Shown: positions 353 to 48,399 of the stretch, piece by piece | Position numbering within the stretch: the stretch's first letter is position 1 | Layout: every line of letters starts with the position of its first letter | NCBI GenBank assembly: GCA_002269645.1 | Contig: NIVC01002998.1 | Location: forward strand, 62,001 to 126,000 | Direction: 5' to 3' | Length of the DNA: 64,000 nucleotides | Origin: Macrostomum lignano | Taxonomy: Eukaryota | Position numbers and translations under genes: made by a program | The notes under the pieces: generated by a model | Told to the model about the DNA's origin: nothing | What the model saw: only the letters and a program-made list of their open reading frames with translations | Database searches by the model: none

Positions 353-5854
<5,502 letters not shown>

Positions 5855-13368: not shown

Positions 13369-14359
<991 letters not shown>

Positions 14360-18100: not shown

Positions 18101-19237
18101 AGCTCGCACTTCTATTCTGTTCTTCCTGGATCCCCGGTCTTGAGAAACTGAATAGGCTGGGCTTAGTGCAGAGAGCCCAGCTTACAACGCAGCTTACAAC
18201 TCTGAGCAGAGTTGCATTTGGACAGATCGGAAGTTGACGGGGGATTTTCTTGTACAGTTAAAATAAGTAGAAGTTTTTGAAGAGTTAAAAAGGCCGAGAG
18301 GACCAGGTCCGTATAAATCAGGCAAAATCCCTCTACACCATTGAAATCATGTCGCAGAGATGAGGAGGCATTCAAGATGGAGGATCAAGGCTCCGCTCTG
18401 CTGCACTACTCCGAGGCCGAGCTCACGGCCAGTCGAATCAATCTAAAGGAGCGCCGGCTTCTGTCGCGCAGCTGGGCCCGCCTGGAGGCCGATCGGAGCT
18501 ACCGGATGCGCTGCCTGCAGACGGACCTGCGCCTGGCCGAGCTGGGCCGCGCACGCTTGGAGACGCGCAGCGCTCGGGTGCGCAGCAACCTGACGCAGGA
18601 CGAGCGCAGCGGCTACCGTCGATTGGACGCCGCTGGCATGCTTCGCCTGCCATCGGGCTGTAGCTATTACCGACGTCCGGCACACCTGGAGCCGGCCCAG
18701 CTCATCCAATCCGCCCAGAGACGCTTGGAGGCCGGCGGCACATGCAGTCGACTCTCTCGGAGGCAACACTCGCCGCAGCGCCTGCTGCGACCGAGCACCA
18801 GCAAAACCGCCAGCTCCAGTGCGGTGCGCTTTGTCCGCTCCGACACCGCATTCGACGCGCCAGACGTGGACGACATCAATGACGCTTCATCGACTGCATC
18901 GACTTCGTCGGCGTCGACAACGGAGAGTCTGCGTCAATTGCGCACAGCTGCAGCCGCGTCCTCGGCGCGTCAGAGGCCGCAGACGACAACAGCAACAGCC
19001 AGGAGTTCCTACAGCGCCCTTCAGCAGCAGCAGCAGCAGCAGCAACAAAGGCTTCGACTCACCAGCCAGTCCTGCCATTCCGCATTTTACACCGGCGGCG
19101 AGCAGCGGCAGAGCCACTCGATGGACGCCGCTAGCAGGCGTCGGGCTTGGGCGGAGGCTGAACGGCAGAAGCAGCGCAACTTGGACAGACCAGTGAAGGA
19201 GTTTCTGCGCTCCCTGGAGCAGCTGCGGGTCGCTTGA
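15110..19237 (+). CDS. Coiled-coil/low-complexity protein, weakly CCDC190-like; candidate exons 15110-15156 and 18358-19237
   Basis: The main exon is a GC-rich 298-codon ORF (INLKERRLLSRSWARLE..., C-terminal LDRPVKEFL). The short exon MDFDYSEQIEIRPSK ends AG|GTAGGT (phase 2) and fits the acceptor CGCAG|A at 18357. This link is inferred; ATG 18377 is an alternative start. Confidence 0.6.
15232..17040. repeat. ~28-bp minisatellite (ATGAGTCTTGACAACTCAGCGATTCCCC), roughly 60-65 units
   Basis: Head-to-tail units of 27-29 bp without spacers; internal inverted repeat TGAGT...ACTCA. Confidence 0.97.
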
Positions 19238-20921: not shown

Positions 20922-21888
20922 CTCGAGCTGAGCCAAGCCGAGATTCCAGTTTCTTCAAATGTAGCGAAAAAGTTTCCGGTAGGATTTCTGAGCAGATCTC
21001 TTACAATTCAGAGCAACATGGATTCGACTGGTTGCATAAAACGCTTGCTTGACGAAAGCAAGCCTAAGAAAGGTCCTGGAGCTGGAGGAGATCTCCCAAA
21101 CTGTGCTCAGCGGCAGGCTACCATTCAGAAAGGAGGAAAAGGTAAAAGGCTGCTGGCTCAGGTTTTCAGCTAAGAGACCAAAGCTGAAATTTAGGAGTAC
21201 AGCGTCACGATCTCAAAGCCAGGGGCACTTGCTCATCAACTTTGAGTTCCCATTCCGTGCAGTGCCTGCTGAGCAGTCCTCAGAGAAACATGCACGTGAG
21301 ATTGAAATTGTTGAAAAATCAACTCTGATTGTGCTAAAATTGAATTCTAAAATCGGATGATGACGTGAGAAGTCGATGGTGGCAGGAGAAGCAACACCGA
21401 ATGCAAAAAATCTGCACCAGAAAAGCAGCAGAAAAAGCAGACAGTTGAGACTGAAAGACACTGACAATGAGACGCTCACGGTTAGAAACAAATTTAAAAA
21501 TCGCAAAATTCACGCAAAAATGCATTCGAACGATCCGAACGCTGCACTGAGATTCTATGCGTGGAGGAGCAGCCACCGGCAGCAACCCAGCCTCCCCAAG
21601 CCATCGCACAGCAAACAAATTTCTCTGTCGCGATGGCAACGCGATTCTAAAATCAGCACAGAAAGCAACAGAGAGACAACAAAGAATCTCTCTAAACCAA
21701 TCCAGAGCTCGGATTCATCGGGATCGACTGGCTCGACACTGCGCTCCCGCGCTACCATCGCAACGCCCGCCACCCCAAATGATGAGTTGGGAAGCTGCAT
21801 AAAGCCCACAGTCCTGCAGCAGGCGAGAGGCACAAAAGCGACAAGCAAATCCCATCTCCGTAAAAGACTCTCCACTGCCGCTCTGACC

Positions 21889-23045
21889 ATGCAGACTTTG
21901 TCAATTCTGGCGCTGATTCTCTGCTGCTGCATCGCTCTCGGCCACTCGCTGGGCGCTGAGTTCGGCCACTTGGGCTGCTTCGTGAACGCCGAAACTCGAG
22001 ATGTCAACGGTCTGGATGGCTGGACTACCATCGGGCCATACTCGGTGACGTGGGATAAAGGATGGACCGTTCTGGACTGGAGCAGAATGACTTTGGAGCT
22101 TTGCAGCGAAATCTGCACGTATGAAAAATTCCGGTACTTTGCCGTTCAGTATTCAGGTGGTTACTTCTGCGGAAACTCGTACGGCAGATTCGGCAGGGCA
22201 GCCGACAGCGACTGCAACATGGCCTGCGCTGGCAACTCCGCCCAAATGTGTGGAGGGACGTCGCGAAACTCCGTGTACCGGCAGGTCTACAATCGTTCAG
22301 GTGAGCGTAACGGAAGAGCAATCGATGCGGTTCTACTTCTACACGTACATGTACTTTCCCAGCTGCACTGGGCACAGCATCCATGGTTTAGCACGCGTTT
22401 GCTTCAGCATTGAATATTAAGATTTCAAAGCATTTCACAAAGTCAAACTAGATTTCTGATCCAACACAGATAAACAAATATAATTAATTTTCCGTAGGGC
22501 TGCCGGCACGCTATTAGAACGCTGTCAAAAAATGGTTTCACAACCAAAGGTTTTGTCAATCTTCAGCCCGTTCTGCTGATTTCTGGGCACGTATAAGAGC
22601 ACGGATAGCTGTACGAACTCATACATGAACACTCTCTGTGCCTTGGGATTTAGCACTCCTAGGTGTGAGCGCGCAACGAACACTGAGCCAATTTTCAAAA
22701 GAAAATATATAGCCAGAGTTTGAATGCAGGTTCAGCATGTGACTGACTACAGTCGACATGTCGAAGGTCTCACAAGAGTAGCGGTGCACCACTCAATGTC
22801 TTTTTTTCCTTTCAGATAGCAAGCATTTCATTTTGGCTGACCGAGACTACGTGAACGTGACCTCTACCAGCGGCCCGTTCTACCGCACCGAGCAGCCCGT
22901 CAGGAGTTTGATTGAGTGCGTATATCGCTGCGTCACAGACTGCCAGGCCGTGCTGTTCCACCTGGACGCCTGCCACCTGCTGAGATTCCCCATTCTGCCG
23001 CACGAGCTGAAGGACGTGGCTGGGATGTTCGTCACCCGCATGTGA
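21889..23045 (+). CDS. Secreted WSC-domain protein with a C-terminal PAN/Apple-like Cys module (213 aa); exons 21889-22300, 22816-23045
   Basis: Signal peptide MQTLSILALILCCCIALGHSLG. WSC pattern HLGCF...MTLELCSEIC...YFAVQY...FCGN...DCNMACAGNSAQMCGG...RNSVY. Phase-1 intron TCAG|GTGAG...TTTCAG|AT. Second exon SLIECVYRC...CQAV.F...CHLL. Confidence 0.88.
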
Positions 23046-23480: not shown

Positions 23481-25299
23481 ATCTAACCACAGTTAATATA
23501 TTTACTCCTGGCGTGTCACCTGAGTTCCAAAAAAATAAATATTTTTTGCTGCCAAAAAGAAAGAATTCTAGCGGCTTCTGAGCAGTAGCTTAATGGCATA
23601 TAAATTTCTTTTTTTATCTTGATCGATCGACATAACGGCAGTAGTAGCAACCAAAGCAGATATTGCTGCCACACTATCGACTCTAGCATTATCAGGCATC
23701 AGATTTACAGCAGCGAATTAACTGAAGAAACTTCTCAATTCACACGGAGCTGCTGTATGAGCTATTGTAACACTCGAATATCACACCAGCTTCTACGAGT
23801 ATAAGGCTAGCACCCCAGATGTTGCGAAAAAAATTTAGAGTGTTATACTTCGATATACTACTTGCACAGCAGAAGCCACAATAGCTTCTGTAGGTGACAT
23901 CTCAGGTGTGTATACTATCTATTATTTACACACCTTGAAACGTATAGCACCTGTATCATTTATTTACTTTAGTACACTTACAAAGGGAATTGAGAATATG
24001 AATTGCAGCACTCGATGGATTAGAATGATAAAGCTGTTAGTTAGTTTAACAGCAGTTAGTGAGCAGGCTAAATACAGGTATAATAATTAACACCAGGAAT
24101 TCCTAACCATTTTTCTGCCCGTCGAAATACCATGGATTCAAAGGCATTTTTTGCTTCTGCAGTACGCAAGAAGGCAGATACACGAATTTCAAGGACACAT
24201 GGGCTTGTTTGCTTTTTGCACCTGGCGCCATTTCAATCAAGAACCAAGTAGTTAGACACTCCAAACAGTCGAGATATTCAACAGTTGTAATTGATGGTTG
24301 GACGTTTCTCACAAGTGATATCATGCGAGAAATTCGAAACAGGGTGTCAATAGTCACCTGGTGTCATCGAAGGCCCAGATCCTTTTGAATTCATAGCAGA
24401 TGCATGCACTTGTGGCTGAAATGCTGATAAAATTTTGAGACGTTTTGAGTGATAGTGCTTACTTGAATACACTTGTATCGAAACAAGTCTAAATATTCCC
24501 TCAACCTTTGAAGTTCTACTGTTAAAGCACCGAGTAATAAACACACCTCGCCTTGCAAACATATTGTATTGGTACAACGTAAAAACGTTAAAATCTGGTC
24601 AGACAGCGTTGTTCAACCAAGTTTAAGCGTGGTCTAAACCTGTTTGTAAGCAGAGTTAACTTTGCAAAGCTCACAAGCTACTATGTGAGTAGATTGTAAA
24701 TGAATTGTTCGATAAAATTATAAAATTCACTGTACCGGTAGATGAGCCTCATTTCGAGAAGGCTTCGAGAACTACGATTCATCTGACGAGGTTGTCATAG
24801 TGATAGTCATTGAAGTCCTGCGCTGAGAGTAGGACCTTGAGAGTAGGAATTAGGCCAATTAGGGAGGACTTCTCTCCACCTATAGTCGCGAATCTTATCA
24901 TTCAGTCGATCATCTGCAGCCAGATTTATTAATTAGGAGTTACTTTAAGAGTTTACTATAAATCTGAATTGCTGTTTAATTTATATAGTCAAGGTATATG
25001 ACTATATTAGAAGATAACTTTATCAGAATCGAATAATAATCATCACTAAATTTAAATCTCATCTGGAATTGTCTTCTTAGCGTTATTAATTTACTTTTAC
25101 CGCATTTGCGGTTATTGGAAAAGTGTGATAGGACTCGCCGACCGGTGAATTTAATCCTCCGAATCGCTCCAGTAAGTTTATCTATGGCCAAAAATATTTC
25201 CTGTGTAGCATTCATCTTTTATTGCACAAAAATTTCTGTTTTTTTATATTTTTTTAATTTGATAGCAATAAAGATGACCTACTATGTGCTGATAACGGT

Positions 25300-25970
<671 letters not shown>

Positions 25971-26391
25971 TCAGCTTGCAACGAGTTTATGGATGTTCTG
26001 GAGTTGAAGTTGGTACCATGTTAGACGAGAGACATTACGGGGGATTTACGCTAGCCTATTTTATTCATAAATAATTTCATGTAGAGGTGCGCATCTAAGC
26101 GCGTGTTTTATCGCTGTTGGAATTAGTTACTTTCTGCTGGTGTGCGCTCCTCCCGATGAACATGCTTGTGTTGTCTGGATTCCGTGATGCGAAAAGCCTT
26201 ACTCTGGTTTATTTATCGCCATTTTGTCAGTCTTATTTTTAGACATACAGTATTTTGTTCTCTGCAATTTTACAATTGAGATAGGTTTTTGAAGGCTATG
26301 AGTCGTCCTCTATATACGCTCGTGAAGAGAAATCTTAGCTCGTATTGAGCTAGCGTTCTACATTCCACGTTTACTCTCAAACACTCGTACA

Positions 26392-29301
26392 ATGGAAGTC
26401 TTTGACGTCCTGGCTCAAATTTTAGATATAGGAGAAGGCATCATCGCGACATCCAAGAATGTGGGCAAAGTCGTGGGGGCCATTGTCGGCGACGTGTCTC
26501 AGCTTCGGATGTCGCTGGATAATGAGAAGGCCAACATTGATCGGGTGCTGATGTACGAATTCAGCTCGGCTACAAGACAAGTCAGTTATGAGGGCAGCCA
26601 GACGCAGAGCATGTTTCGCAACCTGGGCCAACGATGGTGTCGAATTTCAGACGAGCTGTCTCGAGCTATTAGCTTGAAGCGACTCGAAACCTGGAAACTG
26701 AATGAATTAAAAGAGCGAATCTCTGATGCCCTGACATTCAGCAGCTCGTGTGAGCAGAGCTACAATGTATTCAAGGAGCGGCTTAACGAAGCCTTCAACA
26801 TCGCGCTCAGCCTGTGCGACAGTCTGCAGTCTGGCGCACAAAAAGCAAAGGCTGGGGCCAGGAAAGCGAAGATCGGTGGCTACGGATCTGCTGGCGTCAT
26901 GGGTGCCGGAGCTGCTGCCTGTGCTGTTGGCGCCATTTTTACCGGCGGCTTGTCACTGATTGGCACGGCTGTTCTCGGGGCCGGAGCGGCTGCGGCTGCT
27001 GTGGCTGCCAAAAGGTGAGATTAATATGTTAGGCGAGGGTAGGTTAACGTGTAGGTTATAATTAATCCAAATAGTCGAAAACTATTTACTGGAAATAATG
27101 CGCTACGGAAACACTTTTTTCAGAAGTACAAAAAATAAGTTTTTTTGTAGTAGCGCGAATGTTGAGCATTCGACTGACAAAGAGACTTATCTAGATGCAT
27201 GCATTATCTGTCGTATAGATTATCTAGATTATGGACACGACGCACAAAAAGCTGCAGAACTACAATTATGTACCTTCAGTTCTGAAGGGGATGTGAAAGG
27301 GAAGAGTCAAAATGGAGCCTGAAGAGTTGGGTCCCGGTTTCTTTGCGCTAATCTTTTTATTTGTACCCAAATATATATAGATCCCGTTATGCCGAAAACC
27401 CTACCGATTTAGCATTTGAGGATCTCCATGAGGATACATTGGATAAATGGGGATTTCATGTGATTGGAAATTTTTCTGTGTTTTTTTGGGTTTAATATGT
27501 TTTCATTTTGTTTTTTTTAGGACCCTCTAGTATGCAGGCATTTATGAAACATTATACTAAAACTTGACGTTAGTTACATGAGAATGATTCGGAGCAAGCA
27601 TGTTTCAGAGTTGCTGAAGAATGGTGAACGGTTTAAGCTGTGTTTTTACGCATACCAGTCTCAAATATCTTGAGGACTTCTTTCAGTGTATTTTTTCGTC
27701 AAGAAAGTAGATTAATCCCGAGATTAGGTGATAAGCATATACGAGTGGATAGACATGGAATGAAGCGTGCGTTCTAAAAAACAGAAATTGCGAAAGCTCA
27801 AATTCTTTAAGCTTTTCAAGCAAACTTAAGAGATTAAGAGATTATTCAGCAATTATAACGGGTGTCCCAAAAAAAGGGTAATACTTTGTGCGCTCACTGT
27901 GAGTGAGCAGTTAGGCCTATAGCACAGTAATTTAACAGGTCCACAGTAAACATTTGTAAGTTTTCCCACAAACATTTGGTTGCGAAAAATTGCTCCAGAG
28001 GCGAGTTATTGAGCACAGAAGTGTACGCTAGCTTTTCTGCCAAGCTTTGCCATACACAGCTGCCATAGACAATCTTTTGCTTTAAAAAATCTTAAGGAGC
28101 ATAGACTCTGAGACGGTGTGGTCAAGTACCAGTTTATTTGAAAAATCGTTATTGATTTTTTGAGCTTGTAAGTGTACGCTAGCTTCTCTGCTAAGCTTTG
28201 CAATAGACGGAGGCCATAGACAATCTTTTGCTTTAAAAAAATCTTAAGGAGCATAGACTCTGAGACGGTGTGTGGTCAAGTACCAGTTTATTTGAAAAAT
28301 CGTTATTGATTTTTTGAGCTTGTAAGTGTACGCTAGCTTCTCTGATAAGCTTTGCCATAGACGGAGGCCATAGACAATCTTTTGCGTAAGAAAAATGACA
28401 GAGCATGCCTAGACTCTGAGACTGATCTAACGTTAAAATTTCTTAAATTTCTTAAACGTTAAGATTGTCTATGGCAGCTGTGTATGGCAAAGCTTGCAGA
28501 AAAGCTAGCGTACACTTCTGTGCTCAATAACTCGCCTCTGGAGCAATTTTTCGCAACCAAATGTTTGTGGGAAAAACTTACAAATGTTTACTGTGGACCT
28601 GTTAAATTACTGTGCTATAGGCCTAACTGCTCACTCACAGTGAGCGCACAAAGTGTTACCCTTTTTTTGGGACACCCGTTATAATGGGGGGGGGCATAAC
28701 ATAGAAGTATTATCGCTCCTATTCTTCGTACAAACATACAAAGAGCGTTGTTTATCATGGTCATCTCGTCATTTAAGCATTTGAAGCTCCAAATGAAGGG
28801 ATTGGCGGAGAGAAACAAAGTTCACATCCCGTTTTTAAACTTTCTGATATTTAAAAAGCTTTTTAGAATCGCTTTAGTCCAACCAAAGTTATGATAAATT
28901 TAATAATATAATTTAGTATTTAGGATGATTTCAAAACTTTTCGTTTAACTTTTGCGCGTAAACTCTCAGATAAATAAATTTGGTTGTTGACTATTTGGTG
29001 GACTTTCACAAAACAAAAATTCAGTTTTTAACAAAATTTAAGACACGCAGGTCAACTGGAGAATCTCGCCAACGAGTTTCAACAGCGGCTTAGTAATATC
29101 AACGAGTCGATTCGCAACATGGAGTACCTTGATGAACAAGTAGAAGAAGCCCGCCTGCAAGGTCTGAGCGCTTGCATAGACCTAAATGAGCAGATGGAAC
29201 GGCTGCAGGTGGAAACAAACCGGCGTACGAAAGCGGAAAATATAAGGCGCAACATTCGGCAACTGCAGTCGCAGCTGGATTATCTTGACGATTCGGATTA
29301 A
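26392..29301 (+). CDS. Apolipoprotein-L-like helical protein with a Gly/Ala hydrophobic hairpin (~293 aa); exons 26392-27014, 29043-29301
   Basis: Amphipathic N-terminus, then GAAACAVGAIFTGGLSLIGTAVLGAGAAAAAVA (resembles the ApoL LAPFT(A/G)GLSL segment). Phase-2 donor AAAG|GTGAG fits acceptor TTTAAG|A at 29042 and gives a coiled-coil C-terminus. Confidence 0.6.
27858..28679. mobile_element. Non-autonomous Tc1/mariner-type element (822 bp) with ~219-bp TIRs and TA target duplication
   Basis: TA|ACGGGTGTCCCAAAA ... TTTTGGGACACCCGT|TA. 27858-28076 is the inverse of 28461-28679 with about 3 differences. Internal ~150-bp direct repeats; no transposase. Confidence 0.9.
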
Positions 29302-31215: not shown

Positions 31216-34200
31216 ATGGAGCCGGACTCTTCTAAAGGAGTCGAAGTGCCGAATGATGGCGATCCGATGGTATCGTTCGAGCCTCAGCCGACGCCGCCGC
31301 CACCGCCATCAACGCAGCCTTCGCCGCCAACACAGCCTCCACTGCCAACGCCACCAAATGACGACGACTGCAAACGTGAACTACTGCTTCAGCTGACGCA
31401 ACAGAAGAAATTTGATGACGCAAAGAAGATTATACAAAGTTTAAAGAACACAGCTGCACCTTTACGTCGAGATCAGCTGCTACGGACAGCTGTTCACTAC
31501 GCCGCGATGGATCCAAGCGGGTTTGAGCTATTGAAGGATCTCACAGAACTGGTTGGCGCAGGCTGCTTGGCAACCCCTGACCGCAATGGAGTGACTCCGT
31601 TTCACTTCGCAGCGCAATATCTGCCTGATAATGCCTGGAATACATTTATTAACCCGCTTGTAACGGAAAGCCATCTTAAGAAGAGAGATAACGCAGGAAA
31701 TACTTGCGGACACTATGCAGTCCGCGAACAGCGTGCCAATGATGGAGTAATACTTTCTATAGTCCATAAGTCGGGGCCGAGATGCCTGGATGTTTCAAAT
31801 GAGATTAAAGAGACGCCTCTTCAGCTTGCGGTAAAAAACTGCACCTCAAAAACAGTTAAAAAGCTGTTGAAAGAGCTCAATCCGAGGTGGCTTCAGGAGG
31901 CAGATGACGAAGGCAACACAGTAGCACATTACGCGGCCATGAACCCGAGAGGCGCGGTACTTAAAGTTGTAAAAAAAGTGGGCGATCCCGTTCTTTTTTG
32001 GTCTAACAATCACAAAGAAACCGTTTTACAAATAGCGCTTCAGTTCTGCTCGATTCCGAAATCGCACTTGCTTCTGAAAAAAGCTGTAGCAAAGGCTGCT
32101 AAATTGCCAGGGTCGAAAGAGTCGAAAAAACTTCGGCAGCAGGATTCGACTGGAAAGACATGCTTACACAGTACAGCGATGCTTAGCGACAGGCAAGAAA
32201 TTCTGCTTCAGGCAGTAGAGTTAGGGAAGCCACTCGGACCCGAATGTCTAGCCTGGAAGAACCAAGCCGGAAGTTCAGTGCTGCACGTTGCACTTGAGCA
32301 TGGCCGCCAGTCCGAACCCGCAAGCACAGAAGTCTTAGTCAAATTGATTTCAAAATCTACAAAAGACGTTCTAGCAAAGGTTGATGCAAACGGTAATACA
32401 TGTCTTCACATAGCCGCTAAGAGGAGAGACAATCATCGATTGTTACGTGAGGCTATCCAGAAGTGCGGAAAAGATTGCATGTTCTGGCCAAACAAAAGAA
32501 ATCAATTGGTAATGTTCTTTGCTATTGGAGTTGTCTCTTCCAAAGAACTAGAAGAGGCATTGAAGAATGACATCCCTTCTGACGATTTCGGCAACACTCT
32601 GTTGCATTACCTCCTTCAAGGCTACAGCAGCGAGTCAGTCTGTGTTGGCTTAACCGATTCTGCAATCGAAAAGCAGTCTACAACTGATATTCTTGAGAAG
32701 ATCGATATCCTTATTGCTTTTGGCGTGGATCCACTTGAGGAGAATATTGCCGCTCAAAACTTTCTACATTGGGCTAAGTTGCCGCAAAATTTGCTTAAGA
32801 AGCTTTTAACAGATTTTTCCGAATCTCATGGGCTTAAGGCCCTGTACGAAAAGCTAGATTGTGGGTCAAATGGACTCCACTTGGTTCACACGTACTCAAG
32901 AAAGTACAATTTGGAAGTTTTATTAGAGCCATTATCGAAACTGTCGGATTTAAAAGAAAATAGACTTTTGAGCTTGGCTGTTTCCAAGGGCGACAACAAG
33001 GGTGCCACCTGTTTTCATTTCGCCTGCGAAGGTGGCCAAACAAGCAGTTTTCGATTCTTATTGAAAAAAGGTCCAAATATTAGCGTCAGCATCAAGACGC
33101 TGACAGATTCCGAACTGTCTTGCATTGACTTTGCTATTGATAGAGGTCACCTCGAGCCGGTAATGAAAGTCTATACAGAATTTGAAGCTAAGGCACTTCA
33201 GAAAAAAGGAATAGGCTCCAAAGCAGCATCAAATGCCGCAAGAATTACTCTCTTGCGCCTCGTTGATCCGATTAAGAAGGCCGTCTCGCTGCCGGACCGG
33301 GTGGCAGCTCAGAAAGCGCTTGCTTCAATAATCGACCAGCTATCCGACGATTCAACTGCCTGTCGGAAGGGCAGAAGAGGCCTGCAAATACTAGAAAGGG
33401 CGATAACGCTCAACTCAACAAAACTATTTCGCAGCGCTCTAAAGATGAACTTTGTTAACGCCACAACGGAGAGACTTTTGCCAGAGTTCTTGCGCTGCCA
33501 GCAGCATCGAAATTTAGAGCTAAGCGTGATGAATTGCCTGTGCATGGGTGACAAAATTGGAAGGCACGGCTGGGTCGATGCTTTTTCTGAGTTGTCTGTC
33601 ATTGACATTACATGTTCACACTCTGAGCACTACGATGAGATTTTGTTGGACTTGGTACTCACTCGGCAATTTGAGCTGATTCCGGCCAGCATTAACCTAC
33701 TCATCAGGCTGGGCCCCGAGATCGACAAGCTACGCTCGCAGGCACGTGGCAAGCACGCTACGCTGCAGGAGTTGTACAGAAAAGTGCAGGAAATCGCTGT
33801 CAATTCTCTTGAAGAGTTGTTCGCTAGCGCTACTCAAAAGCGTCAGCGAGAGCTTCTCTTTGAGTTCCTTCAGGGTCGAATCGAAAGCGCAGAAGGCGTG
33901 TCCGGTCCCAAGTTTCCATTTAGAACTCTAAACAAGAAAATAAGGCATGGCGCCGTAACAGACATGATTGAGGAAGCTGACTGTAACGAGATTTTTGCGA
34001 CAGACTGCATCTACAGCTTGGTGCAGCAGGAGTGGAAGACTGGACGAAGGCCCTGCAGGTGTAGCACATGCTCAGTTTCGAATAGCAAACAAAGTAGTGA
34101 AGACTGCTGCTGCAGATGCACCCGCGAGTTCTATTCACCGCGAGCAAAATTCGGGACTTACTGTACCTTTTTCGCCTTTCTAATTATATACTTTACATGG

Positions 34201-35404
34201 TACACGGTTGACTTCAAAAATAGTTTCGCCCACGTTTCAACTGACATTCCTTTGATATTCTATTGGCTATCCTTCGTTTTCCAAGAAGTTGTCGACTTCC
34301 GCAGACGGAGGAAGCGGCGCAGCTATCTCGTATGCGGCCGCCTCTGCAGATGGCCCACTTATTTTGAGGACTTACTGAACTTTCTAGAATGGCTCGTAAT
34401 TGTTTTTTTACTGGTTGGTCTGATTTTGAAATGGATACTGCTTGCTAATTCGCTACCTTTAACTGCAGCATACCCCTGTCAGATGGTATTTAGCGTCGCT
34501 TTCGGCCTGCTAATGTTTCGGGCAGTGCACTTTTTGAGCCTATCAGCCGTCATTGGTCCTGTAATAACGATGCTATGGAGTCTAGTATTCAATGACTTGC
34601 TGCCATTTCTGGCAATTATCGCCGTCATCATAATCGCTTTCGGAGTGTTTTTCTTCAACCTACTTTTCTCTGTGACTGGAGTGAACACCCAGTCAACTTA
34701 CTACAACAGTCCTTGGTACAGCTGGGACGCCACTGTTGCAGCGATAACTCTACCATTTAACATACTGTTTACAAACTTTGAGAAGCTAGAATTTGGGAAG
34801 ACGTTAACGAATATCACGATTGGAAAATCAGCCCACACGCAAGGAATCGGAGTGTTTGAGAATCTGATGCTGTTCCTTTTCATGGGGCTGGTGAACATTG
34901 TTATGCTGAACCTACTGATCGCGCTCTTCAACCTTCGGGTCAACCGCATGGCTAATGAAGCTCTGGGGATCTGGCGAAGGACGTACTTCGGCATGCTGAA
35001 GGAGTACCAAAACTTGAGTCCGGTTCCGCCACCGCTGTCATTTCTGTGGTACATCTACGATTGCTTTGTGAGAAAATGCTCTTGCAAAAAATGTAAAAAC
35101 TCTGCGGGAGTGGCTCCGAAGAAGAAGGTTTGTTTTGTTTTTTTAATGGCGCGGTGACTCAGTAGGCTAATTGACAATTGTTTTGTCTCTATTTCAGACC
35201 GAAAACTGGTGGCGTGACCCTAAAAAGTATCCCGAGGAGTACATGGATTTTCTGGAGTTCCAAGCTAACCAATTAAGGCGGTTCCGCGCTTCTCTGCTAT
35301 CCAATTCCAACTCCAATAGCCGAGATGATCTCATTGATCAATTGAGTCATCGATTGAAAGTACTGGAAGAACAGACTCAGGCGGTACATGAGAAGCTGAA
35401 GTAA
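31216..35404 (+). CDS. Ankyrin-repeat TRP cation channel (1372 aa); exons 31216-35127, 35198-35404
   Basis: About 12 ankyrin repeats (G.TPFHFAA, GNTVAHYAA, GNTCLHIAA, GATCFHFAC...). Six-TM block with S6 LFMGLVNIVMLNLLIALFN, TRP helix IWRRTYFGMLKEYQNLSPVPPP, C-terminal coiled coil. 70-bp phase-0 intron AAG|GTTTGT...TTTCAG|ACC. Confidence 0.93.
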
Positions 35405-37931: not shown

Positions 37932-39768
37932 TTAACCTGTAAATTCTAAATTTGCAGATCGCTCTCGTACTGTATGGACTACTAGCAGTAGGCTGCCAGC
38001 GTTTTTTGTGTGTTCGTCCTCCAAATCTTACGATTATCAATATTTGACATACATGTAGTTTTGCTTATTAATAACATATTTTTAGGTCACATATTGTACT
38101 CTCTGAGGGATTACTTGCTCGCATTAAGATATTTTAGTTTTTGGTCTTCATGATGATGAAGTTGCCAATCATTTTTACAACGGATTTTATAAGTTTTGGC
38201 CCAGAAAGTCTCATGTGATTTTTTAATTTAGTTCTTATTATTCTTCGTTGATATGGAATCAAAGATCATTGTTCTGGTCTCACCAGACAATCACGTCGAC
38301 CTCCGCGGTAGCTGAAATTATTGATCCAGTCAATAATGAGAAGCAACATTGTTTATATTGACTAAGATCGGTAGATGTACTCGAAAAAATATTTGAGTGC
38401 AAGATTACAAACTCAATGATAAAAAACAAACATCGTTCAACAAAGTAATTTAAGCAAGACTATTTAATTAAAAATTCGATACCTGCTTATTTCATTCAAT
38501 CATAGTTTGATTTGTTCTTCCAAAAACAATAAAGCCATCGGCCTACGCGAAAGTCCTTCATCGCTAGAGTTATATTTCCAGTTCGTGATAATCATTTCCC
38601 ATGTCCCACGCACTCAAATCCCAGTTCCTATTTAGGACTTACTTATCACAGCTCTATATCGACCAAGTAATTACCGGAACTCTAATCCTACTCATTTTTT
38701 TCGCACCTATCTTACCATCCTCATCTACTTTCCACTCTTCCTCTCTGTCATTCGCGTGCAGAGTCCCACAGATCTTCCCTCAGCCCTTAGCAACAGCAAT
38801 TTTCCACGAATCCTATTCCCGATCATCCGATAGGCCTCCCAGCGTCCTCGCTTAGTGCTGTGCCATGCTTATATGGAGTAGTTTTCCATAAAAGTATCTG
38901 GCCACTTCAGGCTCTTCCGCGCAGCTCACTTCCCTCATCCTCTCTCTCTCTCTCTCTCTGTTCCTCATTCGCTCTCCCCTCCTACTTAAGCTACCTTCAG
39001 TCTCTGCTTGCGCATGATCCTGCAGCAAAAAAGTGTCTATAAGCCCTTAGGCGCTATTTCTGCTCCCCCCCTCTTAGCCTTCGTCCTCCGGAATATCCTC
39101 CGGTCGGGTCTCCCCATCTCTTCCTCTTGATCGTCCCGGCCCGTCCCCTCTTCACATCGCTCCCAAGCCCTCCATTCTTCAATTTTGCGGCCCTAGCCAG
39201 CGGCTATAAAGTAAGAAAGCGTCCAACAAACCTAATTTACTGCTGGCCCCGTTCAGGAGAGAGAATTAAAAAAAGAGCAGCATATACAACGGCTGCAACC
39301 GCGTCCTCGGCTCTTTTCCAGCAGAGCGCGGAGCCACCTGGACTTTGGCGAGTAAAAAGCTCCGTCAGAGTGTCTAGGTGGATCCAGCAACGGTGAAGCT
39401 GTAACGTTTTAACCTCCCCCTTCCCCAATTCGACTTTTTACCCCCCCCCCTCCCTGCCTGGCCGGTGGGCCATCCAGTTGTGTCCCAGCACGGCATCGAA
39501 GCTTCTCTATTTGTTCCTTTTCTTCCAGACTGAACGGTTGCACGAAATTTAAACCTTTTTTGATTACTGGATGCCCCACACAGCCTATATTTAGAGATTG
39601 CAACATGCCATGTAGCAGCAGTACGTCTAACCTTCGCTTCGCATGTAAACATTGATATATTCATCGCTAACGTACTAAGGTAAGTGTAATCATAATTTTT
39701 TCTAATTGCTAATGGGCTAGTTAGGTTATTAAGTACTGTTTCCTAAAAAAATATGTAGATGACAATGA

Positions 39769-40272
<504 letters not shown>

Positions 40273-40361
40273 GACACTATGACAGACAGTTGACCAAAAG
40301 CTATCAGCTATCAGCTAATCGCGTCAACTCACTTCCAGAACGTCAGCCGTGTATTTTGAGC

Positions 40362-40852: not shown

Positions 40853-41310
40853 CTCTTTACTCACCGTACTCTACTCTCTACTCACTGTACTCTACTCTCT
40901 AATCACTGTACTCTACTCTCTAATCACTGTACTCTACTCTCTAATCACTGTACTCTACTCTCTAATCACTGTACTCTACTCTCTACTCACTGTACTCTAC
41001 TCTCTAATCACTGTACTCTACTCTCTACTCACTGTACTCTACTCTCTAATCACTGTACTCTACTCTCTAATCACTGTACTCTACTCTCTAATCACTGTAC
41101 TCTACTCTCTAATCACTGTACTCTACTCTCTAATCACTGTACTCTACTCTCTAATCACTGTACTCTACTCTCTAATCACTGTACTCTACTCTCTAATCAC
41201 TGTACTCTACTCTCTAATCACTGTACTCTACTCTCTAATCACTGTACTCTACTCTCTAATCACTGTACTCTACTCTCTACTCATTGTACTCTATTTTATA
41301 CTCACTAAAC
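40853..41310. repeat. 21-bp minisatellite (CTACTCTCTAATCACTGTACT), ~21 copies
   Basis: Directly visible; produces the false ITVLYSL tail of ORF 40290-41315. Confidence 0.96.
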
Positions 41311-42054: not shown

Positions 42055-42480
42055 GTACTGCTCGATTTAAACTAAATTAAGTGATTCCTGTTTTGCGGTT
42101 CATGGCTTAAAAATCATTATGAAGGTAAATAAAAAAGCTAAAGGTAATATTACTCGTAGATCGCGGCTCATTTCCCACGGTGAACTAGTAAAAGTAGGTT
42201 AAGTGTAGGCAGAAGTGTAGCTTCTGGTGTCAAGTGGTTAAAATGAATAAAAAGGTTTCTTGAGAGGCGTCTGAAGAGTCTAAGTGCCACGCATTAAAGG
42301 AAAAGTAAAACTCAATTAAACGGATACTATACTCGTATGGAATCAGCTTTGAATTTTGTTAACAAACGTAATTATTGGTTAGAGGTTACGTTTATAATTA
42401 TAGAAAACGCCTGCTAGAAAAAGAACACAGCAAATTCTATAGAGTCTTGTAAGAAAGTAAACTCTGCAAAACCACAGGAG

Positions 42481-43554
42481 CTACTGACGCTGCACCATGC
42501 ACGCCTCCAGCCAGTCGTCGCGCACCCTCGCTTCGTTCACTTGGCTAATACCATTGCGCAACTCGATAAGATCTACGTCATCCGGCAGTTGGCCAAGTAT
42601 GAAGATGCAAATTCGAGCAAGAGGCCGGTAGATAATTCCATAGTTGTCCTGCTGAAGGAATTCTTGCTGATTAAAGTCGATCCTGGCCACCTTTTGGGGA
42701 GATTCGTCCAGCCGCTGCCAGCCCGGGTTGTCATCCCAGTGCGGGAAGGTGACAAAAAACCAAAACTTGCCTGGCTCCGCATCGTCCAGAGTTTCTAAGA
42801 CTCTCTCGGCAGTGGCGTTCAGCACAGGCTCCACAAAGGGCGGGCCGAGACTCCAGCCGCCCGGATATCCGGACAGGTCGAGGCGGAAGAAGTTTCCCAG
42901 ACTGCCAAACGCGGCGTCAGTGTCATTGAACAGGCTGCAGAACTTGACGCCATCTCGTCCCAGAAGGCGGCAGTTCAGAGGCGACGAGAAGCCCTCATAG
43001 GTGACGTGGCCAACGTCGTACAGAGCGTCGAGTCCCGACACGCACATGCCAGACTCACCGCCGTAGAACTTGCACAGATGAGCGTAGCGAAGGCACATCA
43101 GCGCAGTCGCGTCAGTGCCGTATGTTTGCGCCAGGTAGCGAATTCGAAGACAATTCCGGGTTTGGAAATCACCCACGAGTATATTTCCACTGGTTCCGCT
43201 CTCGGTGTATCGAACAGCAACATCAGGCAGTGGTTCATCCTCGAGATCAGTGCCCAGAAATTCTTCGATACTGTCGAACACCTGGTTGGATATTCTCTTT
43301 GCCGTATCTTCATTCGCGCGTAAATTCTGTTGCAGCATCCTCTCCAGTTCCGTCCTGAGGTTTTCATTAAACGGTTGCTGTGGCAACAACGGATAGGCAG
43401 CTTCTTGATCCGCTGTGTTGAAGAGTTGCACGATTTGCAGAAACCTACCAAACACGTTTAATGCGGCATTCTTGTGCTTATTCTCGGGACCCCATTTAGG
43501 AAGGGCTGTTCGAAAGTCTTGAAAAAGCCTTTCGATAAAATTGTATTGTCGCAT
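42481..43554 (-). CDS. PCIF1/CAPAM-like methyltransferase-domain protein, copy 1 (intronless, no WW domain, 357 aa from the internal Met)
   Basis: LRY...EGFSSPLN...FCSLF.DTD..FGSLGNFF...GGWSLGPPFVE...F..TFPHW matches the PCIF1 catalytic pattern (ECFASPLN...YCSAF.DTD..FGS.G...ANPPF...P.W). The original ATG at 43600 is out of frame. Confidence 0.85.
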   Translation of the reverse strand: MRQYNFIERLFQDFRTALPKWGPENKHKNAALNVFGRFLQIVQLFNTADQEAAYPLLPQQPFNENLRTELERMLQQNLRANEDTAKRISNQVFDSIEEFLGTDLEDEPLPDVAVRYTESGTSGNILVGDFQTRNCLRIRYLAQTYGTDATALMCLRYAHLCKFYGGESGMCVSGLDALYDVGHVTYEGFSSPLNCRLLGRDGVKFCSLFNDTDAAFGSLGNFFRLDLSGYPGGWSLGPPFVEPVLNATAERVLETLDDAEPGKFWFFVTFPHWDDNPGWQRLDESPQKVARIDFNQQEFLQQDNYGIIYRPLARICIFILGQLPDDVDLIELRNGISQVNEARVRDDWLEACMVQRQ

Positions 43555-45505
43555 CTCTTTGGCGATTTTTTTCCGGTTCTATTCCAGCGAATTCGGCCAT
43601 TATTTTCACACGGCTTGATTGTCTCAGTAATCGTTAGGGTAGTTTAGAGTGCAGATATTTGCAGCTCGGTGTTTTTTCAATGGCCTGTATTTATGTCGTT
43701 GCTCTCCAGCCGGTAGAGATTTTCATCGTTTATATTTCCAAGAAATGAAACAAAATCTACGACAATAAAAATTCTCGCTGACGCGAGCGAGGGCAGGGAA
43801 ATGTACAGTTTTGCAACTGAGGCAAAATTCCAGGAAATGGCTACTGTACATAACTCAGATCCAAATAACTGGATGTATAGTCTCTTCGGCCCTGAAAATT
43901 GTTTTTTTTAACTAGAAACAATAGCCCAAGTGGCGCGCGCCGCCACTCGCTCATTGTAGGCAGCGCTAGAGCAGCTTATGTCCAGACAAAAAGTGCGCAC
44001 AGTTATGTTCTTACCCCAAAAAGTCTGACCCCCGGCCTCAGTTCGTCTTTATGCAAAAGAGAGAGGCATACGAAGCTGCCGTGAAATGCGCAAGTACCTG
44101 CCGCAAAGTTTTGCTAGATTAATTTTCAAAATATATGATGAGACCATCTTCAATTCGAGCACAAGAACGATGACTTAACTGGACAAGCTTTTTATCTTCG
44201 AGTACTATTAGTAGCATTTAAAGCTCGACGCTTCGAATGATGGCAACCAAAAACTTGATCAAAGTGATATTTTCTAGAATTTTGCAACAAAAAGTAACTG
44301 GTCATTTTGAACATTGATTTTAAACTAGGATGACTGTAGGAAATTATTTTGAAGACAATTTCACTTCTAGGATTATAAACTCAAAGCTGAAGTTTCTAAT
44401 CGGTGTCATATCTTAACTGCAACAGGTACGAACAAGATTAATAATTAGATTTGCAGGAGGGTTGTGGGCACCCTTGCGTAGCATCTTCCCTGACATAGCT
44501 CTACAAACAGCACTGAGACAATTCTGCCTCAGTCTTTTTGTCCTTTTGTTTTCAGTCTTTTCTGCCTCACTCCGGAGCACATTAGCACGCTTCAAACATT
44601 AGCACATTAGCACGCTTCCTGACTTTCAAATCGTCAGGAATGTAACACTATGTGCCTTGTAGGTTGGCATACATGGGTGTAAATCGCATCGGCTAATTTT
44701 CGGGAACAAGCCCTAGATGAATCAAACCAGAGGTACGCTCGTAGTGGTGCGAGAGTCAAATTAGTTTACTACTGGCTTACCATCTGGAGACAATGGCGCA
44801 ACATTTGTGAGTGCGACTCTATGACTTGCTGTAGGTTTTTGTTTTTTGTCGTAGTCCAGATTTCAGGGTGACAGATCAGGACGTGCTCAACTTAATTCAA
44901 TCAAAATCAATTGATGAAATCTATGGCATCGTCTTCGCCCTCCCAGTATGATCAGCAGCATCTCGAACGGAGATAGATTAGAGACTAAGACGCTGAAAAG
45001 ATGCAACAGATTACCATGTCTCTTTCTACTTTAAAAAAGGTCTTTACGCTCAAACCAAGCCACTGGTAACTTTTGAGCATTCTACTTTTGCCAAACAACT
45101 TTCCAAACATGATATTTAATAGCAATTAGTAGCAAAACGTCCAAAAGCACAGTTCTAGACTTTTTATGCGTAAAATAGTTGCTGAGGATCTATCGAAATA
45201 TAGAGGGTATTCAGAGAAATTCAGTACATCAGAGAAATTGTCCTTGGGTATCTGGTGCCACATGTTGAAGGCCAAGACACTCTGCTTGGGCCACGACACT
45301 CTGCTTGGGCCAAGACACTCTGCTTGCTCCCGATGAGGCATCTGCGGTGTCAGCATGGGAAGCGCAATCTGCTAATTTCAACATTTCTACGGTGCTAAAA
45401 ACACCAACTCCAAGACTTAAAAAAAAAGTCCAAGCAGACTTTTCGACGAACATATCGGAAGCAGCACCGACGCCCACAGAGCCGACTCCTCCGGTGCTCC
45501 CTTCA

Positions 45506-46829
45506 ATGAGGCTTGGGCCTGGCTACATCCACAATATGCAGCAGCAGATCCAAGGCCTTGTTGATTTTCCGTTGGAGAGCCCACATGGTCTTCTTTATGT
45601 GCAGCTGAGCATTCACCGAGAGTTTGCGATGAGAAGCAGCGCACTTGAGGCCAAAGTCGATGCGCTAACGAGTGAGATAACCGGATATCGCTCGGAGATC
45701 AAGCGGCTGTCATCTATTATTGATCCTAATAGTGAATCTGTCCAGGTGACAACTTTCGAAGCGATAGACTCGTGGGAAGACTATATCCGCTTCATTGAAA
45801 ACCCCGAGGTTTTGCACGAGAATTCGGTGAGTGTATAATACGCTTTTTGTAAAAAGTGTTTGTTTTGTAAAAATATGTAAAAAGATTTACATCTTTTGAG
45901 ATTGAGGCTGAGCAAATTGATGCATTAACTACTGTGTATATATACATAAAATACAAAAACTGAAGTAAAGTTTAAATATCCCAGCTAATTAAAAATCGCT
46001 TTGAACTCTTTCCTTTGACAGAGAAATCATTTGCGACTCTTCGCGCGTGCCAAGTGGGAAGATTCGGTACGCGACATGCTCGACTCCGCCCCAAGGCTGA
46101 AGATGCAGGCCGTGGTCAACTACAAGGGAGTCGACATACAGCAGCGAGCCACACAGGCTGGTGTACCTACCCATTTAAGTGACGATGATCTTGGACTTAA
46201 AAAAGTATTTTTGCCATTTGTTCAAGGTTAGTGCTATTTTTCACTATAACATTTATGAGCAGATCTTTAGCTCCTATGATTCAATACAAGTTAGACCGCA
46301 TGCACTGCTTAAAAAGACTTCAAGAATAAGCCAAATTATATCTCCAATCTACTACTACCCGACCATGAGTAGCAATGCAAAAATGTTTTTTCCAAGAAAT
46401 TTTAATTAAGATCTAATTGTTGCTGTTCATTTATCTTTAACAGAAGCGGTCACGAAGATCTTCGGCAAAATCGGAGATGACAAAAGGCCTCCGATCGGAG
46501 CGGTCGCAAACGCTTGCCGCGATCACCTCAAGCGCGGCGGCGATCGTTTCACACAGCGAATTCATCGCAAGGCCAGTGAAAAACCTCGGTCTACTAATAA
46601 ACCTCAGCGGCTGGTTTGCAAGTATCGACCTCAGCAACCCCAGGAGCTTTCAAAGACTGCAGCCGCTTCTGGAGCAGCTTGTGCCGTGCAGCAAAGACAG
46701 ACCCAGAAGAAAGCTGCCGCCTCTTCAAAGGCGGCTTCACGCAAGCGCCGAAGATCTAGCGACTCTGATTCCTCTGATGCTAGTTCTATCGTGGACGTGT
46801 ACTCGAATTCTAGCGATTTTGAAATCTAG
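45506..46829 (+). CDS. DUF4806/BEN-like domain protein; exons <=45506-45826, 46022-46226, 46444-46829
   Basis: GT-AG introns (phase 0, phase 1) join a coiled coil to DSVRDML...VVNYKG...LGLKK.F..FVQEAV.....I..V...LKRGGDR, the DUF4806-type pattern, followed by a basic/Ser-rich tail. The 5' end is uncertain. Confidence 0.6.
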
Positions 46830-47708
46830 TAAAGTATGAACACTTGACGTCATCTCATTGTAGTTAACAATTATTTTTGTGTAATTTTATCGAGTTAAAT
46901 TAGCTAAACAGTGAGTTTAATGTATGATTATGAGTGCATGCAAATTTGAAGGATCTCGTAAACCAGTGCTAACGGATACGATTATCAATAGTCGCTGAAC
47001 TCAGAATTGTCTATTCAGCTTGAGTGCTCACATTATGTATTTTCTATTTTGTTTAAACTTCCTTAGTTACTGGTAGTTAGAAACAAAATTATTTTGTTTA
47101 ATTTCTTGCTAATGCAAATTTTCCTTACGCTTATGTTAGTTTTTTTCAGAAATTCAATGATTAATTACTAGCATATTTTAAACATAAAGTTTTTTATAAA
47201 TATTAATAAACCTTTCGTACTCTGAAAAGTATTTGTTTGCTCATGTACTCGCTCATGGGCTAAGCTCATGTACTCGTAGTTACTAAAGAAGTCAGCTGAT
47301 GCAGACACATGTCGTCGACGTGCTGATGGCTTGGCAAGGCGCATAGAGGCTTATTAAATATTCTAGCGCTCATGAAAAAAATCCGACCTTCTGGCAGAAT
47401 CGTTCAATATATCGACGGTCCTGAGGGCTGCTGACTTGATTCTGCGTTGCTCCAGTAACGACGCAGCGAAAACGCGTTCACATAAAAACATTTAATTTTT
47501 AGCTCAACTCGAGATCATAGCACTATTTCAGCTTTCAGCATCTTTCTCTTTGCTTTTATTTGATAATCGAGCCAACCGGTGCTGGAAAATTAAATCAGTT
47601 TGAGGAGGACGAGAGGTGAGCGGGTGGGGTTGCGCTGAGCTTGCACAGCAAAATGCCTACTGAGCACTAGAGCTTAACCCAGCCCAAATGAACAAGCTCT
47701 AGGCCAGT

Positions 47709-47990
47709 GTGGTTGACACTCGAACAACCCCGGAATCTGGAGTGAGCTTCCACAGCCAGCCTCTCCAAGACGCTGCTCTTGAGAAATGGAAGCGAGAAAA
47801 CCCGAGAAGACAGTTTAAACGGGCGAAGTTCTCCAAGATTTGCTCTCGCGATTTTTATTTCCCCATGACTTTATTAAAGCATCAGCGGATACCAACGTCA
47901 CACGCAAAGAGAAGCGAGTCGCTATCAAGGAGGTGTCTGAAGCTTGAAGCGGTTCCATTCATTTTCCCAAATGCTCCCATCTACTTATGA
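47709..47990 (+). pseudogene. Degenerate THAP zinc-finger domain (P-element-type transposase N-terminus remnant)
   Basis: GVSFH..P....LEKW......F...K.SKICS.DF.....LKLEAVP.IFPN.P.YL follows THAP spacing. The N-terminal CxxxxC is lost and the ligand His is replaced by Asp. Confidence 0.7.
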
Positions 47991-48399
47991 TCTCACAAGA
48001 AGGCACAGCGAGCAACCTCAGTGACCTCAGGAGAAAGAGCTGGAATTGGAGTCTTTCTGGAAGCCGACTTCAATGCTGAGACGAACCTTCAGGAGATTTA
48101 GCTGCAAGCTGGAGCAGGAAGCAGCCAAGCCAGCTGGATTCCAGACGGCTATCCAAGGCAAGCTCTGCATCTATATGCTACAGACAGCTTCTGAATTCGT
48201 GACCTTGTTTTTTCTTGGGCTTAATTCGTTACAGAGGCATGGCCATAGAATGCTATTTTCGGGTGAAAAGTGCCAATGAACAGGAGGAAAACCGACATTC
48301 ATACGAGCGTATTGGCTGAAGGCTGATTCTCTTATCAACTGGACTTATAAACGGAGGGCTTCTGGAAGACGTGACATTGAAGCTTAAGAATGTTGACTT

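Follow-up and report, generated by a model that had tools for sequence, protein, structure and literature searches.

The closest described relative of the gene reported here is TRPM-MCLZ (Smp_333650), a schistosome cation channel that is activated by meclonazepam, with the ligand lying in the VSLD (voltage-sensor-like domain) cavity (PMC10788528). This channel carries multiple N-terminal ankyrin-like repeats and is built without the MHR1/2-SLOG region (MHR, TRPM homology region; PMC10788528, PMC11731825, PMC12861061). Its Schistosoma gene, Sm.TRPM-MCLZ, has three exons versus 36 in TRPM-PZQ (PMC11731825), and its clade, called 'TRPM-like', adjoins the other flatworm TRPMs in a published TRP tree (PMC12861061). 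Flatworms have two validated drug targets of TRPM type, TRPM-MCLZ and TRPM-PZQ; in the literature searched, TRPM-MCLZ is described in parasites only, and the origin of its ankyrin architecture is not discussed. Here we describe a gene of the basal, free-living flatworm Macrostomum lignano, located in a stretch of 64,000 nucleotides from assembly GCA_002269645.1 (contig NIVC01002998.1, positions 62,001–126,000 of the forward strand; hereafter the window, whose coordinates are used throughout). It is an intact ion-channel gene with a long ankyrin arm and a TRPM-type channel body. Most likely it encodes a SLOG-less, ankyrin-armed, TRPM-like cation-channel subunit of the flatworm TRPM-MCLZ lineage, as part of a divergent, expanded subfamily.

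A preliminary description of this DNA had noted that TRPMs lack ankyrins and had inferred a new hybrid TRP subfamily. The premise reflects an older view, since Himmel et al. had described TRPM and TRPS as free of ankyrin repeats (PMC7306681), and the proposal is not supported, because a channel with ankyrins and without SLOG, of which the window protein is a relative, has already been published as TRPM-MCLZ. The ankyrin-TRPM architecture itself is thus not new; we found no description, in the literature searched, of its presence in a free-living flatworm or of the divergent, expanded subfamily that includes the window gene. What the preliminary description had observed was confirmed: an ankyrin array and a TRPM-like module lie within one open reading frame (ORF), each of the motifs it listed (pre-S1 helix, Cys clusters, TRP helix and terminal helix) was located in the protein, and its attribution to a flatworm is correct. 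The ORF is uninterrupted for 1313 codons (31216–35157, + strand). A spliced model of two exons extends the product to 1372 residues with a TAA stop, and its last position, 35404, is the end coordinate that had been proposed (Table 1).

The channel module is clearly of TRPM type and not of TRPA, TRPN, TRPV or TRPC type. A single-sequence search of the PDB with residues 641–1313, for which the best 60 matches were listed, was led by Nematostella TRPM2 (8.5e-14), followed by TRPM8, TRPM4 and TRPM5. Non-TRPM matches in the same search were Chlamydomonas TRP1, TRPV1 and NOMPC at about 1e-4 to 4e-3 (NOMPC 3.7e-3), and neither TRPA1 nor TRPC was among those best 60. When the search used a profile built from 13 members of the subfamily, all of the best 60 PDB sequences belonged to TRPM1–8 (E 3e-41 to 2e-21). 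The profile alignment begins before S1, crosses the TRP box and PPP motif and continues in the C-terminal helix up to residue 1208 of zebrafish TRPM2, in a segment taken to be its C-terminal coiled coil, while alignments to TRPM4 start at the position of the pre-S1 helix. An AlphaFold model of residues 677–1372, made from a 65-sequence alignment, has a predicted local distance difference test score (pLDDT) of 86.3 and a predicted template modelling score of 0.84. Its best 50 Foldseek matches in the PDB were all TRPM, with no TRPA or TRPN among them, and the alignments span the linker and membrane domain (614–799 columns, query TM-scores 0.49–0.60). A first model, from a six-sequence alignment (pLDDT 50.6), gave TRPM and TRPC matches at TM-scores of 0.2–0.3 and is given little weight. 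A TRPA/TRPN-type channel was rejected, as the PDB sequence and Foldseek matches are TRPM-type and so are the TRP box and post-TRP region; the TRPM-like module of the preliminary description is thus borne out, with no grouping with TRPA, TRPN or TRPV.

Residues of the channel body were compared with those of described TRPM channels. At the columns of the TRPM Ca2+ site (E and Q in S2, N and D in S3), the VSLD of the window protein has E1024, D1027, N1055 and E1058, a putative Ca2+ site by alignment in which all four residues are oxygen ligands and two are substituted relative to TRPM. S4 contains the conserved Arg, R1103, and H1106 three residues on. The Cys-rich loop before S1 is an insertion, found in some paralogues only, that may be acylated or redox-sensitive. 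Behind the TRP helix, the window protein has a further Cys cluster, located where TRPM7 (C1143/1144/1146) and TRPM6 undergo S-acylation, at the C-terminal end of their TRP domains (PMC10903462). The AlphaFold model ends in two helices (fragment residues 641–662 and 671–695, pLDDT ~90), a rib-type helix followed by a coiled coil; the Pfam family TRPM_tetra had no match in the window protein.

Between the ankyrin array and the channel lies a linker of about 250 residues, on which Pfam found no match in the window protein. In hhalign comparisons, the linker of the window subfamily matched the pre-transmembrane region of its ankyrin-TRPM relatives (Prob 84–88%, E 3.5e-6 to 8e-6), including the LPDLILTRQFELIP motif, and this region of the relatives in turn matched the canonical TRPM MHR (Prob 98%, E 1.8e-13). 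Because these intermediates match both the window linker and the canonical MHR, the best reading of the linker is that of a divergent MHR3/4, a homology that appears through intermediate sequences only. The N-terminal part of a canonical TRPM is missing. SLOG/MHR1-2 (Pfam LSDAT_euk, PF18139) had no match in the window protein at E values up to 10, NUDIX had no Pfam match in it, and neither LSDAT_euk nor the TRPM2-like domain PF25508 was matched by Pfam in any of the 13 subfamily members scanned. The canonical TRPM P0144, used as a control, gave 1.3e-61 for LSDAT_euk and 1.2e-26 for the TRPM2-like domain. No subfamily member was matched when phmmer was run with the N-terminus of the canonical TRPM P0048.

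HMMER, run exhaustively against 1.84 billion representative proteins, revealed 855 relatives. The top tier (38 proteins, E < 1e-30) consists of tens of paralogue clusters at 50% identity and, where its members are named, they are from M. lignano and have the order ankyrin-linker-channel, with one exception; more than 15 paralogue clusters, lying on different contigs, share this order. The preliminary description had suggested at least two paralogues, and there are indeed two in the window and tens in the genome. The second tier is also ankyrin-bearing. It contains M. lignano P0049, P0055, P0056, P0083 and P0102, all with a short ankyrin block, PF25508 above its gathering score and Ion_trans, and all without SLOG, along with sequences from trematodes (Opisthorchis, Dicrocoelium) and from the cestode Schistocephalus. 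Ranked below these ankyrin-bearing tiers are the canonical TRPMs with SLOG, among them lamprey TRPM2 and a TRPM2-like protein of a hemichordate. Word-indexed protein searches reached close Macrostomum copies only (seven matches with a linker-plus-transmembrane query, five with a 20-sequence profile of the region from S1 to the TRP helix, S1-TRP), and the low yield of the profile was probably caused by hydrophobic words swamping the candidate list.

The sole top-tier match not labelled Macrostomum is P0026 (1537 residues), a subfamily member on a 5.1-kb marine contig of a metagenome-assembled genome named 'Kangiellaceae bacterium' (MEE4247282.1). This contig is almost certainly a eukaryotic (flatworm-like) contaminant in a bacterial bin.

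A neighbour-joining tree of S1-TRP (110 sequences, 290 columns, 200 bootstraps, unrooted, with TRPC, TRPN, TRPA, TRPV and TRPS outside the sample) recovered the window subfamily, the Macrostomum PF25508-positive group and the parasite group each as a clade with 100% bootstrap. A single split with 86.5% bootstrap separated all sequences with detected ankyrin repeats, plus some fragments clustering with them, from all other TRPMs. The window subfamily is 22–24% identical to everything else across S1-TRP. It is a very divergent subfamily, with tens of paralogues in M. lignano, within the flatworm ankyrin-bearing 'TRPM-like' lineage.

The parasite clade of this tree is TRPM-MCLZ. A search with the Dicrocoelium protein found one orthologue of about 1380 residues per trematode or cestode species, and the clade can be named because the length and residues of the Schistosoma sequence P0220 match those published (PMC10788528, PMC12861061): it is 1380 residues long and has H827, H831, Y864, E868, R943, H946, Y1038 and Y1117 exactly at the published positions. 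Like the window protein, TRPM-MCLZ (in Schistosoma mansoni, with orthologues in trematodes, cestodes and monogeneans) has ankyrin repeats in place of SLOG/MHR1-2, a TRPM-type S1–S6, a TRP helix with an EY..PPP box, C-terminal helices and a gene of few exons (three versus two). The window protein has equivalents of E868, R943 and Y1117 and a His at the H946 position, and both proteins fall on the same side of the only well-supported deep split of the tree. The two differ in many respects: they are only about 24% identical across S1-TRP, the S1 His-His pair and Y864, marks of TRPM-MCLZ and of its closer Macrostomum relatives, are absent from the window protein, and the putative filter is F-E-V in TRPM-MCLZ versus T-N in the window protein. 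The TRPM-MCLZ orthologues P0047 and P0065 have about three Pfam ankyrin stretches versus the approximately 12–15 degenerate repeats of the window protein, which in turn is without a Pfam-detectable TRPM2-like domain and has the extra Cys-rich loop before S1. Copy number also differs, with one TRPM-MCLZ orthologue found per parasite species versus tens of subfamily paralogues in M. lignano. The window protein was rejected as an orthologue of TRPM-MCLZ, as it has Y, F and F at the columns of H827, H831 and Y864; the S1 His-His pair is present in the parasite sequences and in Macrostomum P0049, P0055, P0056 and P0102.

At the column of H946, the residue that sets the meclonazepam sensitivity of schistosome TRPM-MCLZ, the S4 segment (34513–34560, MFRAVHFLSLSAVIGP) of the window protein carries His, as does that of its closest paralogue, P0011. 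In most other subfamily members the column holds S, A, R or E, and in canonical TRPM2-like proteins it holds His. This His is probably the ancestral state and not a sign of drug sensitivity. Among the TRPM-MCLZ orthologues, the Opisthorchis viverrini model P0035 (1906 residues) contains two consecutive S1-TRP modules (residues 687–1000 and 1362–1690), which fits the published mutually exclusive exons 3a/3b of TRPM-MCLZ having been concatenated by the gene predictor.

M. lignano also has unnamed co-orthologues of TRPM-MCLZ (P0049, P0055, P0056, P0083, P0102 and P0149), which share species and domain order with the window protein and whose pre-transmembrane region is the bridge from the window linker to the TRPM MHR3/4. 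Unlike the window protein, they have PF25508 above threshold, a G-D/E-Y filter and the S1 His-His pair, which is otherwise confined to TRPM-MCLZ. Their N-terminal ankyrin block is short (two to five stretches by Pfam and a repeat profile), and they are 32% identical to the TRPM-MCLZ type versus 23% to the window subfamily. Canonical TRPMs (TRPM2-like; 6co7, 6drj and others) match best, in sequence and in structure, over the whole part that starts with the pre-S1 helix and ends with the coiled coil, and they share with the window protein the oxygen ligands at the VSLD Ca2+-site positions, the S4 Arg and the TRP helix. Compared with them, the window protein is without SLOG/MHR1-2 and NUDT9H, has an ankyrin array and the TRP box WRRTY, and has no filter Gly. 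It also differs from TRPS (soromelastatin), which has SLOG and Nudix domains and no ankyrin repeats (PMC7306681), in having ankyrin repeats and no Pfam match to SLOG or NUDIX. With TRPA1 and NOMPC (TRPN), the window protein has a long N-terminal ankyrin array in common, whereas the channel module, TRP box and post-TRP region differ. The electrophile sensors of TRPA1 are cysteines of the pre-S1 region, and the window protein also has pre-S1 Cys residues. The preliminary description had also drawn a link to praziquantel, which concerns TRPM-PZQ, a different and canonical TRPM; a relation of the window protein to that channel beyond the general TRPM fold was rejected.

Several results weigh against the placement of the window gene as a TRPM-type channel of the TRPM-MCLZ lineage. 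Pfam found only ankyrin families in the window protein and no match in its channel part, and Ion_trans was reached by five of the 13 subfamily members scanned, the window protein not among them. The alignment given to AlphaFold contained canonical TRPMs and biases the model towards the TRPM fold, making that model supportive but not independent. The filter motif FTNFE, without the canonical TRPM Gly, is unusual, as is the TRP box, which is WRRTY and not WKFQR. The direct hhalign comparison of the linker with the canonical MHR is marginal (E 0.009 with the pre-S1 helix, 0.22 without it), so we claim linker homology via the intermediates only. In the tree, which is neighbour-joining only and unrooted, the order of the three ankyrin subclades has 38% support, and S1-TRP identity is 24% to the TRPM-MCLZ type versus 22% to canonical TRPMs. 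As the former is barely above the latter, the grouping may owe something to long-branch attraction. Finally, the public models of the locus (P0001–P0003) are fragmentary, truncated or internally deleted. The simplest reading is still one ankyrin-TRPM fusion in the flatworm lineage, because linker homology and tree both join the window subfamily to the other ankyrin-TRPMs.

An unlikely alternative is that the ankyrin TRPM-like channels are an old sister family that branched before canonical TRPM gained or fixed SLOG, and that they keep an ancestral, TRPC-like plan of ankyrins, helical linker, channel and coiled coil. The one supported split would fit this history, as it sets ankyrin-type apart from SLOG-bearing TRPMs, with a deep attachment in the canonical cluster that adjoins no particular group, and the published tree likewise puts TRPM-MCLZ 'next to' other TRPMs, not among them (PMC12861061). 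The architecture also parallels that of TRPC, and TRPC4/5 were among the matches of the first, poor model. However, all named members found are flatworms, with few unnamed hits, and if the origin were ancient, other phyla would have to have lost the lineage; Himmel et al. infer that the ancestor of TRPM and TRPS was free of ankyrins (PMC7306681), intron-poor genes suit a secondary, lineage-specific origin equally well (PMC11731825), and our tree is without an outgroup. We also entertain, as a tentative and rather doubtful proposal, that the flatworm ankyrin TRPM-like channels are a family-level lineage beside TRPM. Such a lineage may have kept the ancestral plan or may have arisen when a 5'-truncated, intron-poor TRPM retrocopy came to lie behind an ankyrin gene, an origin suggested by the few exons (two in the window gene and in P0012, three in P0055). 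In Macrostomum it would have radiated into tens of long-armed channels that act as a lineage-specific set of thermal, mechanical or chemical sensory receptors, their ligand pockets being unlike those of the drug-target channel. If true, an ancestral ankyrin-plus-linker plan would contradict the ankyrin-free TRPM/TRPS ancestor.

The ankyrin array bears on a second alternative. On the window protein, Pfam found Ank_2 (E 3.3e-23, eight stretches), Ank_4 (1.6e-19) and Ank (1.9e-14), with five Ank families in all. Motifs of the G-x-T-x-x-H-x-A type lie near residues 90, 125, 161, 199, 233, 264, 313, 352, 393, 459, 596 and 635. A relaxed repeat scan gave 12 matches (residues 90–647), and three further degenerate units near 430, 505 and 545, which had no scan match, were read from spacing alone. 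The repeat counts are based on Pfam and the relaxed scan; a phmmer query with a single consensus ankyrin repeat detected none of the degenerate repeats of the window, and an iterated repeat profile recovered only three or four of them. With spacing included, the earlier estimate of about 12 repeats was a fair one. The array is most similar to itself at an offset of 80 residues (z = 4.1), a two-repeat period that is 71–77 residues in paralogue arrays, and this subfamily-wide period of 71–80 residues indicates tandem growth of the array inside the family.

That the array was captured by exon shuffling from a TRPA1- or NOMPC-type gene, independently of TRPM-MCLZ, to give a true TRPA/TRPN-TRPM chimera, is very improbable. 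NOMPC (6.7e-17) and a TRPA1 (1.3e-13) are the best PDB sequence matches of the array, ahead of generic ankyrin proteins, but significance is inflated when many repeats are matched, and similarity between repeats is weak evidence of descent. The two-repeat period points to in-family growth, the best PDB matches of the TRPM-MCLZ array are ordinary ankyrins and DARPins (designed ankyrin repeat proteins), and linker and tree tie the subfamily to the other ankyrin-TRPMs. As a statement of descent, the 'TRPA-like array' of the preliminary description is therefore opposed by these results, and nothing shows the array to be TRPA-derived.

The least probable alternative, that misassembly or read-through joined an ankyrin gene to a channel gene or that the locus is a non-functional copy, would agree with the truncated or internally deleted public models, a frameshift in the neighbouring paralogue and a highly duplicated genome with many recent copies, but a stop-free ORF of 3.9 kb does not arise by chance, the same domain order recurs in the paralogue clusters noted above and also in other species, functional positions have been conserved, 44 columns being invariant among 13 paralogues, and the intron position is common to P0012. 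A gene-fusion artefact was rejected on the long ORF and the recurring domain order.

If the window gene encodes a TRPM-like subunit of the TRPM-MCLZ lineage, homology with TRPM and TRPM-MCLZ suggests that four subunits would assemble through the C-terminal coiled coil around a cation-permeable pore. Gating may be controlled from the S1–S4 cavity, the site of E1024, D1027, N1055, E1058 and the S4 Arg. Because this cavity keeps four oxygen ligands and the S4 Arg, intracellular Ca2+ and/or a small cavity ligand would be the likeliest trigger. The ankyrin arm may serve as a cytoplasmic docking module or as one that transmits force or temperature, and the membrane-adjacent Cys clusters are candidate sites of S-acylation or possibly redox sites. 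Judging from how large the expansion is, the channels may have a sensory role in the free-living animal.

These findings place the ankyrin-TRPM design in a genetically tractable flatworm, and they do not overturn TRP classification. In Macrostomum, close co-orthologues of TRPM-MCLZ occur alongside a greatly expanded subfamily that is far more divergent, and the graded linkers, from the canonical MHR through the PF25508-positive ankyrin-TRPMs to the window subfamily, document a remodelling of the TRPM N-terminus. With RNA interference and transgenesis, M. lignano is a laboratory model for the role of an ankyrin arm in a TRPM-type channel, and the subfamily is a natural panel of S1–S4 pockets for ligand studies.

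Table 1. Features of the ankyrin-bearing TRPM-like gene and of its paralogue in the window
Feature	Window position	Strand	Protein residues	Description and evidence
Exon 1	31216–35127	+	codons 1–1304	Pro-rich N-terminus, ankyrin array, linker, S1–S6, TRP helix, post-TRP Cys cluster; ORF and splice model
Ankyrin array	31468–33180	+	~85–655	~12–15 degenerate repeats, two-repeat unit ~80 residues; Pfam, motif positions, self-similarity
Helical linker	33244–33975	+	677–920	Motifs LRLVDP...LPDR and LLDLVLTRQFELIP; ~11 helices in AlphaFold model; hhalign
Pre-S1 helix ADCNEIFATDCIYSLVQQEW	33976–34035	+	921–940	Aligns with TRPM segment FishxxcQxlLxxiW.G
Cys-rich loop, pre-S1 helix to S1	CRCSTC 34054–34071; CCCRC 34105–34119	+	947–968	Unstructured in model, pLDDT ~50
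S1–S6 domain	34138–34950	+	~975–1245	PDB sequence searches, alignments, AlphaFold helices, Foldseek
Pore-helix end and putative filter LPFNILFTNFEKLEF	34750–34794	+		T-N in place of the G-E/Q of canonical TRPMs
TRP helix and TRP box 2 IWRRTYFGMLKEYQNLSPVPPPLSF	34969–35043	+	1252–1276	Aligns with TRPM2 IWKFQRY.LI.EY..RP.LPPPF
Post-TRP Cys cluster CSCKKC	35077–35094	+	1288–1293	Candidate S-acylation site; alignments
Intron, GT...AG, 70 nt, phase 0	35128–35197	+		Joins exons in frame; position same in paralogue P0012
Exon 2	35198–35404	+		WW..YPEEY..FLEFQA helix, then C-terminal coiled-coil helix, TAA
C-terminal amphipathic helix RDDLIDQLSHRLKVLEEQTQAVHEKLK	35321–35401	+	1346–1372	AlphaFold helix
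Second paralogue, S3 or S4 to C-terminus	62575–64000	−		Rest past window end; tblastn 52% identity to window protein

The protein encoded by the window gene is 99% identical to the M. lignano protein P0001 (BOX15_Mlig010193g3). Two public models, P0002 and P0003, splice ...YDCF straight to TENWW, which implies a GTGAGA donor at 35067|35068 that would drop 20 residues including the CSCKKC segment. Because paralogues keep a Cys-rich segment at this position, the longer splice form, with CSCKKC included, is plausible.

The second paralogue was found in two pieces on the − strand (63995–63185 and 62891–62580), with an ORF at 63916–63182. Near 62880, its last exon reads ...RGYWSHESN in one frame and YPEDYLEFLKFQA... 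in another, an apparent 1-bp frameshift at which a base seems to have been lost (the sequence is gaatcgaatacccgg, and the family pattern calls for aat tac). Translated as it stands, the copy would stop ahead of the coiled coil, and the frameshift marks either a decaying copy or an assembly indel. In the paralogue P0012 (M. lignano contig NIVC01000137.1), a 171-residue ferritin gene is called within a 2.5-kb intron on the same strand (L003, 7684–8199).

Elsewhere in the window, the region 42440–57364 is a tandem duplication with a period of 6804 bp, in which 42440–50565 and 49244–57364 are 98.6% identical over 8.1 kb. Its units contain an ORF of 357–372 residues with a PCIF1_WW domain (E 2.5e-25), present in three copies on the − strand at 42481, 49284 and 56087, and an ORF of 177 residues without a family match, present in two identical copies on the + strand at 45305 and 52108. 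Long micro- and minisatellite tracts, from which spurious ORFs result, occupy 385–1230, 2570–4100, 13320–14650, 25240–25980, 39720–40280 and 40900–41300. They include runs of trinucleotides (poly-Y/S/T/L), a repeat about 24 nt long that is rich in GA (RGERGSREE..., GC skew 0.6), a number of tracts of (GACA/TGTC)n ('DRQT'/'CLSV') and a repeat of 27 nt, 'LITVLYS'. Other long ORFs, at 7233–8423, 18341–19237 and 26392–27018, had no family match. An ORF of 345 residues on the + strand (21376–22413) encodes a Ser/Thr-rich region and a hydrophobic segment, followed by a C-terminal WSC domain (Pfam E 5.4e-15).

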